From sequence record MK327931.1: 64,000 nt of DNA. The stretch is one strand, 5' to 3'. The notes below the pieces were generated by a model. It had not been told where the DNA came from and searched no databases. It saw only the letters and a program-made list of their open reading frames with translations. Positions 50,857 to 53,240 of this stretch are shown piece by piece. Each line of letters opens with the position of its first letter. Positions within the stretch are counted from its first letter, which is position 1. The translations under genes were made by a program, and so were the position numbers.

Positions 50857-51693
50857 ATGGCTATGAATCCACTTGCTAAGTACACTAAAATTGAAGAGAT
50901 CAGTACTAAGTTAGTTACAAACGGCGTTATTCCTTATAAAGAAGGAGTTCTAGGTCCAAAAGGTGTCAAATGTGGAGTTTGTGCACGTAGTGCACGTGAT
51001 GAAATGACACTTAATACCCCCGATATGTTACTAAACGGAGATGCAGTATCCCGTGTTATTGAAAACTGTGTTCCTAATGTAATTGACGCTGATGAGTTGT
51101 ATGTAAATGACGTTGAAATGCTTCTTATTGCTATTAAAGTTGCTTCCAAAGAAGAAACATATGATATTAACGTTGTATGTCCTGAATGTGAAAAAGAAGG
51201 TCGATTTGAGCGTAATCTATCATATCTTCTTGAAACTGCACAAGCATTTGAAGAAATCCCATCAATTGATTTAGATAATGGACTCCGTTTAGAATTTAGA
51301 CCACTGACATGGAAAGAATATTCATCGTTTGCTGAACGCATGTTCAGTGAGCAGCAGAAGACTAAGTTTCTTGAAACTGCTGATATTGATAAAGATGAAA
51401 AAGTAAAAATATTTTCTGAAGTATTTGAAAACATGGCTCAACTTAACTTCGACATGATCGGTGGAGTTATTGCAAAAATTATAACACCAGATGGTGATGA
51501 AGTAGTTGAAAAAGAATTTATTAATGAATGGCTTGGACAACAATCGAAGGGAGTACTTAAACTAATTCGTGAAAAAATGGATGAAGTACTTGAAATTGGA
51601 GTATCACATAGTATGGAAGTAGAATGTGATGGATGTAATCATCAATGGGAAATTGATGGACTAAAATATGATCCTAGTCATTTTTTCGAGTAA
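50857..51693 (+). CDS. gp26: Baseplate hub assembly protein (gp26-like)
   Basis: NPL..Y, TARDE..L.TPD.LLNG, D.E.LL.AIK.AS, CPEC, C..C zinc motifs. Confidence 0.75.
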   Translation: MAMNPLAKYTKIEEISTKLVTNGVIPYKEGVLGPKGVKCGVCARSARDEMTLNTPDMLLNGDAVSRVIENCVPNVIDADELYVNDVEMLLIAIKVASKEETYDINVVCPECEKEGRFERNLSYLLETAQAFEEIPSIDLDNGLRLEFRPLTWKEYSSFAERMFSEQQKTKFLETADIDKDEKVKIFSEVFENMAQLNFDMIGGVIAKIITPDGDEVVEKEFINEWLGQQSKGVLKLIREKMDEVLEIGVSHSMEVECDGCNHQWEIDGLKYDPSHFFE

Positions 51694-51902
51694 TGCTTCT
51701 CCAGTCATCTCCTGAAGAAATACAAGAAGTACTGAAGGAGATAGAACTGAATAAGTCAGAAATCAAAAATGCACTAATGGAATGTTCTGTATATATGGAT
51801 AACATTGACTATGGAACACTCCTTAATATGCCATTAATAGATAGAGACTTATTAGTTAAGTCTTTTAATAAAAAAATTAAAAAACAAAACGAGAAGCACT
51901 AA
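51693..51902 (+). CDS. Baseplate hub assembly catalyst (gp51-like)
   Basis: 69 aa coupled to gp26; Y..LLNMPL.DRD motif. Confidence 0.55.
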   Translation: MLLQSSPEEIQEVLKEIELNKSEIKNALMECSVYMDNIDYGTLLNMPLIDRDLLVKSFNKKIKKQNEKH

Positions 51903-51911
51903 TTTTCATAT

Positions 51912-51938
51912 AGCCAGCACATTGTTGCTGGTTTTTTT
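51912..51938 (+). terminator. Intrinsic terminator
   Basis: GCCAGCA-cattgt-TGCTGGT-TTTTTT. Confidence 0.8.
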
Positions 51939-52157
51939 GGTTTTAAACTACAGAATTATTTGAATTGAATTATGAAAGGATTAATTTTAATATTATTGGA
52001 TTCATCTAACTCATTTCATTCGTTAGCTGAAGAATATTCGTTACTACGTAACTCATATTCATTTAATTAAATTAATTATAAAGAACTTTAAAAGATTTAA
52101 TACTTGACGGGATTTGTTGAGGACATTTTCATCCCCCCGCAGGGGAATGAAGACAAT

Positions 52158-52611
52158 AAAAAAGAGACAATGAAGTCTCTATTTCTTGACGCTGATGGTT
52201 TCAGCATTTATTGTATTGCGAATTTCTTAAAAATATATTAAGAACGAAAGCGGGTTGCTCTGTTTCTCTCTATCGCAGTCATGTGCAACGGTCGTCAGTC
52301 TTAATCATCCTGACACTCACCTGAAAGTCTATACAATCAAACTTCAGGCTGTTTATTAAAATCACTTAATAAACTCCCTTAGCAAATCTGGTAAGGTGCG
52401 ATCCTTATATGTCTATCGAGGAACTCTCTGTATGCTTATCGGAGTTCTTTATTGAGCCGCATTGCCGTGAGGGGTTCAAACTATGCCCACATCTAACGGG
52501 TTTCTTTTGCTCATCGCACTGTTGAACTGCTCATCTGCCATCTACATTTTCGATAGGATCAGGTTCTAATTTATATGCATTTCTGCATTCAACAGGATTG
52601 TCATTACTACA
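52158..52611 (-). ncRNA. Candidate ~450-nt structured non-coding RNA
   Basis: Class promoter at 52618-52645, terminator GAGAC-ttcatt-GTCTC-TTTTTT at 52158-52179, no ORF of 60 aa or more, visibly higher GC, about ten stems including UGCA-GAAA-UGCA. Confidence 0.55.
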
Positions 52612-52617
52612 ACAAAC

Positions 52618-52645
52618 ATTATAGCACAAACTTTAAAGTTGTCTC
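52618..52645 (-). promoter_or_regulatory. Phage middle-like promoter (GAGACA-N16-TATAAT) pointing into the non-coding gap
   Basis: tgagacaactttaaagtttgtgctataat. Confidence 0.78.
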
Positions 52646-52699
52646 ACTATTTTTATAAAAATATTCATTAAGTACTTAAAATATTGCAAATAACTAATC

Positions 52700-52707
52700 T
52701 ATAAATA
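52700..52707 (+). promoter_or_regulatory. T4-type late promoter TATAAATA
   Basis: Exact consensus 30 nt upstream of gp49. Confidence 0.72.
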
Positions 52708-52737
52708 TTTTGATAACAAATAGTTTGGTGAGGAATT

Positions 52738-53229
52738 ATGAAAAAAAGATTAAAAGATAGTAAGGATGCTGCAAACTATCGAAACGAATTACTAAAGAAA
52801 CAAAATGGAATAGATCCTATAATTAAAGAACCAATAACTAAACCAGTACTGGATCACTACCACTATGGTAACCAACATTGTAGACAAGTTCTTCAAAATG
52901 AAGTCAATGCTTGGGAAGGAAAGGTACAAAACAGCTTCAATCGATATATGAAGCACTTAACTGATAAACCATTATATGAGGTACTCAGAAATCTTGCTGA
53001 TTACTTAGAGCGTAATAACAGCATTCCTGACGATGAACAAGTTATACATCACACTGCACTAACTGTGGATGTTAATAAGTTTAAAAGGCTTCCAGCAACA
53101 CAGCAAAACGCGATTCTGGAAGGGTTAGGAGTTGTCCCTGGTAGTAACACTACTGCTCGTGTAAAGCAAGCCAGAAAGCTGATTAAGGACGGTAAATTAA
53201 ATATGGTTGATATAAAAAAAGGGAGCTAA
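52738..53229 (+). CDS. gp49: Endonuclease VII (Holliday-junction resolvase), Zn ligands absent
   Basis: KQNG...VLDHYH...R.VL...NAWEGK...FNR...L.NL.DYL aligns over the full length with T4 EndoVII. Confidence 0.88.
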   Translation: MKKRLKDSKDAANYRNELLKKQNGIDPIIKEPITKPVLDHYHYGNQHCRQVLQNEVNAWEGKVQNSFNRYMKHLTDKPLYEVLRNLADYLERNNSIPDDEQVIHHTALTVDVNKFKRLPATQQNAILEGLGVVPGSNTTARVKQARKLIKDGKLNMVDIKKGS

Positions 53230-53240
53230 GGCTCCCTTTA
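53214..53240. terminator. Bidirectional intrinsic terminator
   Basis: AAAAAAAGGGAGC-taag-GCTCCCTTTA between convergent gp49 and gp46. Confidence 0.75.

Follow-up and report, generated by a model that had tools for sequence, protein, structure and literature searches.

The largest interval of this region of the Escherichia phage vB_EcoM_G17 genome that is free of open reading frames raises the question of what it holds. We analysed a 64-kb stretch of the genome of this Asteriusvirus, a Rak2-like jumbo phage (hereafter the window). The interval of 835 bp is the largest one of the window without ORFs of 60 aa or more, the next largest being 250 bp, and the ORFs found inside it are 45 aa or shorter. 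Its GC content is 0.37-0.42, compared with 0.23-0.30 in the flanks. The initial annotation proposed that this gap harbours an undescribed, structured non-coding RNA of ~450 nt running from a promoter to a terminator. Our analyses support this core inference and show that the RNA, whose two ends are predictions in the absence of expression data, belongs to a larger family. The features of the locus are collected in the table below.

Table. Features identified or predicted in the ORF-free interval.
Positions	Strand	Feature	Elements	Supporting observations
51903-52737		ORF-free gap
52646-52618	minus	Promoter	-35-like TGAGACAA, 12-nt spacer, extended -10 TGCTATAAT; predicted transcription start near 52611	Consensus scan
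52611-52157	minus	Predicted primary transcript, about 455 nt	Structured non-coding RNA; both ends are predictions	Conserved in 72 phage records
52595-52519	minus	5′ domain	Long-range helix H1 (52595-88 with 52526-19) enclosing the variable hairpin H2 and the hairpin H3b/H3, which carries the conserved GAAAAYGUA loop and is followed by the conserved AGAUGAG	Changes on both sides in 5 of 8 pairs of H1 and 3 of 5 of H3
52513-52453	minus	Domain 2	H4 (UGAGC/GCUCA) enclosing the conserved GAAACCCGUUAG, H5 (CCGU/ACGG), a replaceable inner hairpin and CACGGCAAUGCGGC	H4 and H5 are 100% and 99.5% paired in 53 sequences, with up to 4 pair types per position; two alternative inner hairpins, or a UUCG tetraloop, occupy the same site in different members
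52447-52320	minus	Central hairpins	H6 (52447-21), H7 (52407-392), H9 (52374-51, variable) and H10 (52348-20), separated by the invariant GAUAGAC and CUAAGGGAG	All 6 pairs of H6 show compensatory changes; 8 of 8 pairs of H10 have changes on both sides
52337-52210	minus	Pseudoknotted core	H10 loop pairing with the 3′ strand AUACAAU (H11, 52337-31 with 52216-10); H12 (52314-294); H13 (GUUGC/GCAAC, 52289-85 with 52258-54) crossing H14 (UGCGA/UCGCA, 52277-73 with 52221-17) and H15 (GAGAG/CUUUC, 52270-66 with 52250-46); variable hairpin 52244-24	H11, H13, H14 and H15 are 99-100% paired in 53 sequences, with 2-5 pair types; block best conserved out to RaK2
52205-52191	minus	Hairpin H16	GCUGA/UCAGC, followed by the first CGUCAAG motif	As read from the alignments, a hairpin is present in the members examined but its register differs (GAYGN/NCGUC in most); 33% of cells pair in the focal register
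52180-52157	minus	Intrinsic terminator	AGAGAC-UUCAUU-GUCUCU (hairpin 52180-52163) plus a U-run	Terminator scan; the stem sequence differs between members, yet 97% of cells pair and 5 of 6 pairs show compensatory change; absent from 6 of 30 members
52151-52128	minus	GC hairpin beyond the terminator	CUUCAUUCCCC-UGCG-GGGGGGAUGAAA	Present in all phage and bacterial members examined; zero pairs with changes on both sides, i.e. conserved as sequence rather than only as structure
52122-52103	minus	C-rich, G-poor tail	CCUCAACAAAUCCCGUCAAG, carrying the second CGUCAR motif and followed by TATWAA	CAAAUCYCGUCAR nearly invariant in all 50 members that have downstream sequence
52060-52006	minus	Two further hairpins	GAAUAU..GUUAC-GUA-GUAAC..AUAUUC (52060-52032) and CUAAC..GUUAG (52026-52006)	Equivalent hairpins with different sequences at the same place in other members, for example GAAUUGAG..AAAAUUC and UUGACAUUC-GAA-GAAUGGCAA or AGACAAUC-GAA-GAUUGUCU; read by eye, not scored formally

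We first asked whether the interval has the signals of a transcription unit. The motif TGRGACAA-N12/13-TGNTATAAT, to which the promoter of the RNA belongs, was found seven times on the minus strand of the window, and other copies head the sigma-factor/gp47/gp46 operon, a gp32-like gene and a PD-(D/E)XK nuclease gene, indicating that this promoter is of the class that heads the replication and recombination genes. Terminator-like sites number 6 in the region against 0.7 expected. The predicted transcript folds with a minimum free energy of -111.7 kcal/mol (z = -2.8 against dinucleotide shuffles, 1 of 100 shuffles being as good).

Next, we collected homologues of the element. The genome of G17 harbours four paralogues that are 69-79% identical, and relatives carry 2-5 copies at conserved genome positions, with 4 places per Asteriusvirus genome, 5 in GAP32, CBB, BF and Yen9-04, and 2 in RaK2. 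The copy next to endoVII is kept in several genera (Asteriusvirus, GAP32, CBB, BF, Yen9-04) and in further uncultured contigs, and the copy at the dam locus is shared by 121Q and RaK2. Single copies were also found in small integrative islands of Serratia, Enterobacter, Silvania, Buttiauxella and rare E. coli chromosomes. Of note, TGnTATAAT/TATACT with an upstream TGRRAY motif precedes every family member, including the bacterial ones. In contrast, no homologue was found among the plasmids of PLSDB, and all hits in the INPHARED collection are jumbo phages, with none in temperate phages. Members differ by indels that are not multiples of three and by swaps of whole hairpins, and there are stops in all frames, which argues against a protein-coding gene or pseudogene.

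We then tested whether selection acts on the fold. RNAalifold on a plain MAFFT alignment gave a poor and strand-ambiguous result (-154 against -149 kcal/mol), and we therefore used a hand-built structure tested by pair counts. In an alignment of 30 sequences, 83.6% of cells pair, compared with 70% in shuffles, and 73 of 113 pairs show changes on both sides. The covariation score is 0.345, against 0.127 or less in slid controls, and none of 500 shuffles reaches it. With 53 sequences below 95% identity, which support about 17 helices and two pseudoknots, 88% of cells pair, against 41-44% in slid controls. G:U cells number 250 against 132 A:C cells, which favours the promoter-sense strand.

Ten of the eleven stems listed in the initial annotation are kept by covariation or as hairpins (H1, H2, H4, H6, H7, H9, H10, H12, the UUCUUAA hairpin and H16), although the focal register of H16 is poorly supported across members. 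The remaining one, a long-range pairing of GAUCCUAUCGA with UCGAUAG..GGAUC, is not supported, as its partners change without compensation, for example C to A in EC22.5-2. A second pairing of CCUUA with the invariant UAAGGGAG is not supported either, because the CUCA of L013-type members cannot pair with it. Helices H3, H5, H14 and H15, the pseudoknots H11 and H13, the paralogues elsewhere in the genome and the conserved sequence beyond the terminator had not been noticed. The implied uniqueness of the element is not supported, as it is a multi-copy family that also occurs outside phages, and the specific roles initially offered (scaffold, decoy or ribozyme) are not supported or could not be tested by our analyses.

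The family matches no catalogued RNA in Rfam 15, which includes tmRNA, RNase P, group I/II introns, GOLLD, ROOL, HEARO/omega RNA, 6S, CsrB and Y RNA. No hits were obtained in the window at gathering scores, and at E-values up to 10 only sub-threshold terminator-like sRNA hits were found in positions 51850-52800, with tmRNA at 5.5 bits against a threshold of 47. Similarly, seven paralogue or orthologue loci gave no hit overlapping the RNA. ARAGORN found no tRNA or tmRNA gene in the window, and we judged an apparent 11-nt resemblance of the opposite strand of the tail (GACGGGAUUUG) to the E. coli ssrA 5′ region to be due to chance. None of the jumbo-phage genome papers searched mentions the element. 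Altogether, the data strongly support that the locus is a gene for a large non-coding RNA of a previously uncatalogued family, with its own promoter of the early/middle replication-gene class of the phage and, in this copy, its own intrinsic terminator, and that selection acts on a complex fold with invariant junction sequences and not on any reading frame.

The function of this RNA is a matter of inference. Our tentative proposal is that it works in trans as a folded particle, made in quantity soon after infection from several gene copies, and that it binds or sequesters a component shared by all its hosts, such as a host protein or RNA machine, in the manner of a host take-over or anti-defence decoy or scaffold, rather than acting by antisense pairing or as a leader for the neighbouring genes. 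Consistent with this hypothesis, orientation relative to the downstream genes is not conserved, being convergent at the endoVII locus and in most islands and co-directional elsewhere, most copies end in a covarying terminator, and copies are driven by the promoter class of the gp32-like, sigma-factor/gp47/gp46 and nuclease genes. Furthermore, tblastn analyses found no protein shared between the conserved backbone of the true bacterial islands and a whole jumbo-phage genome, with only two sporadic cargo hits (a DUF4326 protein and one small ORF), and any partner is therefore most simply a host component, although no candidate has been identified. However, three observations fit a position-dependent role in cis better than a simple dosage model: each paralogue is kept at its own locus across genera; the 6 of 30 members without the terminator, namely paralogues B and C and the BF copy L049, would run on into the downstream sequence; and about 150 nt beyond the terminator are conserved in every context. 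The presence of the RNA in islands that carry a DarTG defence cargo is not obviously what an anti-defence decoy would predict. We provisionally read the conserved hairpin and tail beyond the terminator as a 3′ processing, stabilising or back-up termination module of the same unit.

Among the alternatives, each copy might mark an origin of the T4-like replisome, with a transcript that stays hybridised near the conserved GC hairpin, tail and AT-rich stretch and primes leading-strand synthesis, similar to ColE1 RNA II or the R-loop origins oriF and oriG of T4; island copies would then be origins fired by an infecting jumbo phage. The promoter class, the dispersal of 4-5 copies per roughly 350-kb genome, 50-110 kb apart at conserved positions, their orientation independent of the neighbouring genes, the sequence-level conserved elements just beyond the RNA followed by DNA of 23-25% GC, and the islands, which carry no replication genes of their own yet keep the phage-type promoter, fit this view. 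We nevertheless consider it unlikely, since a primer RNA does not need 17 helices, two pseudoknots and invariant junctions held over such divergence, and most copies have a canonical terminator that should release the RNA before the conserved hairpin. GC skew shows no inflection at copies B, C and D, but this is a weak test for a T4-like phage. No RNA I-like antisense promoter is conserved: plus-strand promoter-like sites in the region are no more frequent than in shuffles (7 found against 7.8 expected), and they fall on covarying helix positions that are not conserved as hexamers.

More doubtful is a cis-acting element, i.e. a put- or EAR-like processive antiterminator or a very large riboswitch-like leader, by which the nascent RNA would modify the polymerase or sense a signal so that transcription passes the terminator into the downstream unit. 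The location of the RNA between a strong promoter and a terminator, the co-directional arrays of small genes headed by most non-focal copies, the copies that lack the terminator and must read through, and the conservation beyond the terminator are in favour of this model, and the need for a copy at each locus would explain the positional conservation. On the other hand, the best-conserved copy, next to endoVII, is convergent with its downstream genes in every phage lineage where that locus was recovered, most island copies are convergent with the CI-like repressor gene, six other promoters of the same class in the window work without this leader, and the RNA is several times larger than any known antitermination RNA. 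By inspection of the focal copy only, no segment upstream of the terminator is complementary to its 5′ arm, whereas such a segment would be expected for a switch. A ribozyme or self-processing RNA, cleaving or ligating for example at the CGUCAR motifs that are repeated 2-4 times per RNA on the 3′ side, is less likely still. Invariant unpaired nucleotides are packed around a double pseudoknot and the size is within the range of large ribozymes, but no ribozyme family of Rfam 15 matches, no hallmark of group I, group II or RNase P cores was found by inspection, and nothing in the sequence shows a cleavage site. Finally, conservation at the DNA level only, for example as a repeated protein-binding region, a packaging signal or a recombination site, or a decayed protein gene, appears very improbable. 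The GC hairpin and tail are conserved without compensatory change, and part of the region is annotated as a repeat_region in phage UE-S1, but dozens of compensatory double changes keep the helices, including long-range pairs and pseudoknots, while the sequence drifts, which largely refutes this possibility, and the excess of G:U over A:C points to one transcribed strand.

A more speculative and rather unlikely scenario, which our data do not rule out, is that the RNA is a new class of large functional RNA that sits at the centre of a conflict between jumbo phages and chromosomal defence islands. The phage would need it in several copies, as an RNA machine or scaffold or as the RNA component of its replication origins, and the small SOS-type islands (serine recombinase, CI-like repressor, DarTG cargo) would keep a copy under the phage-class promoter, to be switched on by an infecting Rak2-like phage. 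That copy would then either amplify or mobilise the island or act as a decoy that starves the phage of the partner of the RNA.

We also compared the element with known systems. Like GOLLD and ROOL, large ornate RNAs of phages and prophages shown by cryo-EM to form homo-oligomeric RNA-only assemblies (PMC12286853), it is several hundred nucleotides long, has many helices and pseudoknots supported by covariation, is carried by phages and other mobile elements, has no associated protein gene and is of unknown function. However, it has no sequence or structure match to them, occurs in Enterobacterales and their jumbo phages, is multi-copy per genome, has its own phage-class promoter and is not next to tRNA genes in the window; only a loose resemblance stands. 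It shares with ColE1 RNA II and the T4 oriF/oriG transcripts a promoter of the replication class, a similar size (about 450-550 nt for RNA II), conserved DNA elements at the 3′ side and several copies per genome, like the multiple T4 origins, but its fold is far more elaborate and conserved, a terminator precedes the putative transition point, and there is no equivalent of RNA I and no evidence of an R-loop or of RNase H processing. The HK022 put RNAs and the EAR element similarly lie between a promoter and terminators, need no dedicated protein and occur in several copies per phage genome, but they are about 70-120 nt long and always head co-directional operons. As for 6S RNA and CsrB-type RNAs, which would share the proposed titration of a host factor, no 6S-like open-promoter mimic was found, and there are only two GGA-type motifs, against about 18-22 in CsrB. 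PA5oct ncRNA002, a putative lncRNA of about 450 nt that makes up to 5% of phage reads in a distantly Rak2-related jumbo phage (PMC7318152), is of similar size and lies in an ORF-free gap inside an array of small early genes. It has no detectable similarity with the family profile (nhmmer --max, E up to 10) and, by inspection, none of the conserved blocks, but it shows that such phages do make abundant long ncRNAs.

Large RNAs with complex conserved folds are rare and have often marked new biochemistry, such as ribozymes, RNP machines and RNA cages. The 2-5 conserved copies per genome imply strong selection, and the presence of the RNA in small chromosomal islands under the same promoter type links lytic jumbo phages to integrative elements in a way that no shared protein does. 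Whichever mechanism proves right, the family would fill a gap in the almost unknown early biology of Rak2-like phages, and it explains the largest 'empty' intervals in these genomes. Of note, it is found in phages that grow on E. coli K-12, and the locus of phage Sharanji is 100% identical to that of G17.

The 841 bases around the element are 100% identical to Escherichia phage vB_EcoM_G17 and to phage Sharanji, 99.9% identical to 121Q and 99.8% identical to PBECO4. These phages are Asteriusvirus, Rak2-like jumbo myoviruses of about 350-370 kb. The window holds no N. The element lies in a gap flanked on one side by two plus-strand genes, coding for a T4_baseplate-domain protein and a 69-aa ORF, and on the other side by the plus-strand endonuclease VII gene (see the table). 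With 835 bp, this gap is the longest stretch of the window without an ORF of 60 aa or more, the next one being 250 bp, and it is GC-richer than its flanks (0.37-0.42 against 0.23-0.30). A promoter and an intrinsic terminator followed by a T-run were predicted on the minus strand. The 455-nt interval folds better than dinucleotide shuffles (z = -2.8, with 1 of 100 shuffles as good).

The promoter motif TGRGACAA-N12/13-TGNTATAAT occurs seven times in the window, always on the minus strand. Other copies are found just upstream of the sigma-factor/gp47/gp46 operon, a gp32-like gene, a PD-(D/E)XK nuclease gene, a gene for a 351-aa zinc-finger protein (possibly primase-like) and other genes. The proposals of the initial annotation that the RNA is driven by a class promoter and co-expressed with replication genes are therefore reasonable. 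Of note, a similar divergent RpoD-like promoter with a TGAAACG -35 region near DNA-synthesis genes was described in the CBB genome (PMC5259590). We also identified a further, looser match to the motif (TTGAGACAAG..GAGATATAAT), which shares the initial transcribed sequence UUGUAGUAAU with the RNA.

Coordinates of the features of the locus and of related elements (window coordinates unless another record is named)
Feature	Position	Strand	Sequence or remark
T4_baseplate-domain protein gene	50857-51693	+	
69-aa ORF	ends at 51902	+	
ORF-free gap	51903-52737		835 bp
Intrinsic terminator of the baseplate-protein/69-aa gene pair	51912-51933	+	just inside the gap
Second downstream hairpin	52026-52006	-	
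First downstream hairpin	52060-52032	-	
C-rich tail	52122-52103	-	CAAAUCYCGUCAR
Post-terminator GC hairpin	52151-52128	-	CUUCAUUCCCC-UGCG-GGGGGGAUGAAA
Intrinsic terminator of the RNA	52180-52163	-	followed by a T-run
Domain 2, H4/H5	52513-52453	-	
5' domain, H1	52595-88 with 52526-19	-	
Promoter of the RNA	52646-52618	-	TGAGACAA, 12 nt, TGCTATAAT
T4-late-type motif	52695-52710	+	TATAAATA
Endonuclease VII gene	52738-53229	+	
Bidirectional terminator between endoVII and the gp46-like gene	53218-53239	both	
Copies of the promoter class	57347, 52646, 38473, 25639, 15609, 9220, 3523	-	TGRGACAA-N12/13-TGNTATAAT
Looser promoter match	about 34535-34507		TTGAGACAAG..GAGATATAAT
Optional hairpin module, UE-S1 (locus L002)	L002 3549-3706; columns about 345-395 and 520-550 of the 30-sequence alignment A1		UACAAUAUAGAUCCGUC(C)AAAAUU
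Island of Enterobacter chinensis (locus L234, JARDVI010000005.1)	L234 5909-16417		
PA5oct ncRNA002 (locus L077)	L077 1452-1902		

In order to determine whether the element is unique, we performed BLASTN searches, which found it in 72 phage records. All correspond to Rak2-like jumbo phages of Escherichia, Salmonella, Klebsiella, Erwinia, Serratia, Yersinia, Cronobacter and Pectobacterium, plus two 'Xanthomonas' phages, with 4-5 matching places per genome even when the promoter was left out of the query. In the unannotated 352-kb genome of EC22.5-2, the four copies lie at about 90.0, 143.5, 223.1 (the focal one) and 333.2 kb, all on the same strand, and the other three are 69-79% identical to the focal copy. 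In 121Q, the other three copies fill otherwise unexplained gaps of 0.6-0.7 kb, between gp415 and gp416, between gp515 and gp517, and after the sigma-factor gene gp167. Using an nhmmer profile and IUPAC pattern scans of IMG/VR, we recovered 2 copies in RaK2 and 4-5 in GAP32, CBB, BF and Yen9-04. The flanking genes define synteny groups. The endoVII-adjacent copy is present in several genera (Asteriusvirus, GAP32, CBB, BF, Yen9-04) and in further uncultured contigs, a second locus is shared by the BF, CBB and related contigs, and the dam-locus copy is shared by 121Q and RaK2.

Next, we asked whether the element is under selection as an RNA. Its members differ by non-triplet indels and by replacement of whole hairpins, and stops occur in all frames. 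We tested a hand-built structure of 113 pairs on the 30-sequence alignment. In this analysis, 83.6% of cells pair, against 70% in shuffles, and 73 pairs carry changes on both sides. The covariation score is 0.345, against 0.127 or less when the 3' partners are slid by 1-3 columns, and no shuffle out of 500 reached it. We then counted pairs on 53 sequences that are all below 95% identical, including the bacterial ones. Overall pairing is 88%, against 41-44% in slid controls, and helices H4, H5, H11, H13, H14 and H15 are 99-100% paired, with up to five pair types per position. G:U cells outnumber A:C cells 250 to 132, in agreement with the strand set by the promoter and the terminator.

On the transcript, H1 closes a 5' domain that holds H2 and H3, and the following domain, H4/H5, holds a replaceable inner hairpin. 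The central hairpins are H6, H7, H9 and H10. The loop of H10 pairs with AUACAAU near the 3' end (H11), forming a first pseudoknot, and in a second one H13 (GUUGC/GCAAC) crosses H14 (UGCGA/UCGCA) and H15 (GAGAG/CUUUC). H16 and then the terminator are found at the 3' end. Ten of the eleven stems proposed in the initial annotation are retained, whereas the long-range pairing it proposed for GAUCCUAUCGA is not. Between the helices lie blocks that are invariant or nearly so, namely GAAAAYGUA, AGAUGAG, GAAACCCGUUAG, CACGGCAAUGCGGC, GAUAGAC, CUAAGGGAG, GACCGU and GAAACNG..ACCCGC.

The conserved unit is longer than the promoter-to-terminator interval first delineated. Beyond the terminator, every member examined keeps a GC hairpin, a C-rich tail and two more hairpins. 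The GC hairpin, which has a UNCG-type loop (UGCG), is conserved as sequence from RaK2 to the bacterial islands, with no pair showing changes on both sides. The tail is C-rich and G-poor, like a Rho-loading site, and is followed by TATWAA. In contrast, the sequences of the last two hairpins differ between members but, as judged by eye, their pairing is kept. Six of 30 members lack the terminator hairpin altogether. A short module, UACAAUAUAGAUCCGUC, is present zero to two times at two different sites, and CGUCAR-like motifs therefore recur 2-4 times per RNA. In some members this module takes the form of an optional hairpin of about 25-45 nt inserted at either of two positions. It is present in the UE-S1 orthologue of the focal copy but not in G17, adds a further CCGUC motif and behaves like a portable RNA module or mini-insertion.

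No Rfam 15 family reaches its threshold in the window, and permissive scans of the focal region and of seven other loci gave only sub-threshold noise. ARAGORN found no tRNA or tmRNA. PA5oct, a distant relative, has an RNA-seq-defined 'putative lncRNA' of about 450 nt (PMC7318152), similar in size and context but without similarity to this family, which may be an independent or analogous large phage RNA. Searches of 8.4 million papers and preprints by phage name, by topic and by literal sequence found no description of the element, and the Sharanji, UE-S1 and CBB genome papers do not mention it. GenBank records annotate nothing at these places, or short hypothetical ORFs, or in UE-S1 a 'repeat_region'.

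To look for the element outside phages, we used a degenerate core pattern and checked the matches with the profile. Full-length homologues (profile positions 50-543, E about 1e-70) were found in bacterial assemblies, namely Serratia fonticola (complete chromosome), Serratia sp. 2723, Silvania hatchlandensis, Enterobacter chinensis, an Enterobacteriaceae isolate, and Buttiauxella and Enterobacteriaceae MAGs. They also occur in about 70 metagenome loci recovered by the profile. Two of 5,426 complete E. coli genomes carry it, unannotated by PGAP, in an island next to ffs, as in E. coli LR-29-1. A 2.8-kb contig labelled Clostridium sp. UBA10317 (DPOH01000171.1) carries an island-type copy whose profile score and extent match those of the Enterobacteriaceae RIT714 copy, and this is probably a binning error rather than a Firmicute homologue.

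Small integrative islands of about 10 kb in enterobacterial chromosomes carry one copy of the RNA between an integrase or recombinase and a CI-like S24 repressor and, as cargo, a DarT/DarG plus UvrD-like helicase defence module (E. chinensis locus L234, and also loci L146/L233, L119, L104 and L211 of our collection). In E. chinensis, the island is about 10.5 kb and is inserted in ppdD, which it splits. Its gene order is a serine recombinase, a 1.28-kb non-coding gap that holds the RNA, a convergent CI-like S24 repressor, an HTH_35 protein, a 286-aa protein with no Pfam domain, an LprI-domain protein, a resolvase, DarG/DarT and a UvrD-like helicase. In S. fonticola, the RNA lies at the island edge next to rof and tilS, convergent with a recombinase/ParB/ParB operon. 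The island copies keep the same promoter type (TGAAAY..TGNTATACT), the same core, and the same hairpin and tail. No homologue was found on PLSDB plasmids or in temperate phages of the phage collection. A tblastn search found no protein of the islands' conserved backbone in a whole jumbo-phage genome, the only hits from true bacterial islands being a DUF4326 cargo protein and one small ORF.

Altogether, the element is a multi-copy, independently promoted gene for a highly structured RNA whose ends are predicted, with selection on the fold. It is not explained by anything catalogued, and it is experimentally accessible in E. coli K-12. We consider it to be a new RNA class whose function is open. 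As for its mechanism, which is inferred, we tentatively favour a trans-acting folded RNA that engages a factor common to its hosts, as a decoy, a sponge or an RNP, because orientation relative to the neighbouring genes is not conserved, most copies terminate and no partner protein travels with it. The positional conservation of each paralogue, the copies devoid of a terminator and the conserved post-terminator module argue against this hypothesis. Together with the replication-class promoter and the 4-5 dispersed copies, those three features fit an origin or primer RNA, which would be reminiscent of the T4 R-loop origins or of ColE1 RNA II. However, such a role, which we deem unlikely, does not explain so elaborate a fold, and GC skew gives no support to it. 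A cis-acting antitermination or leader function is contradicted by the convergent arrangement of the best-conserved copy. A ribozyme cannot be excluded but has no positive evidence, and a purely DNA-level repeat is largely excluded by the covariation.

A plus-strand intrinsic terminator closes the baseplate-protein/69-aa gene pair, and a bidirectional terminator is found on the far side of endoVII. A T4-late-type motif lies about 30 nt upstream of the endonuclease VII start codon, suggesting late transcription divergent from the RNA promoter.
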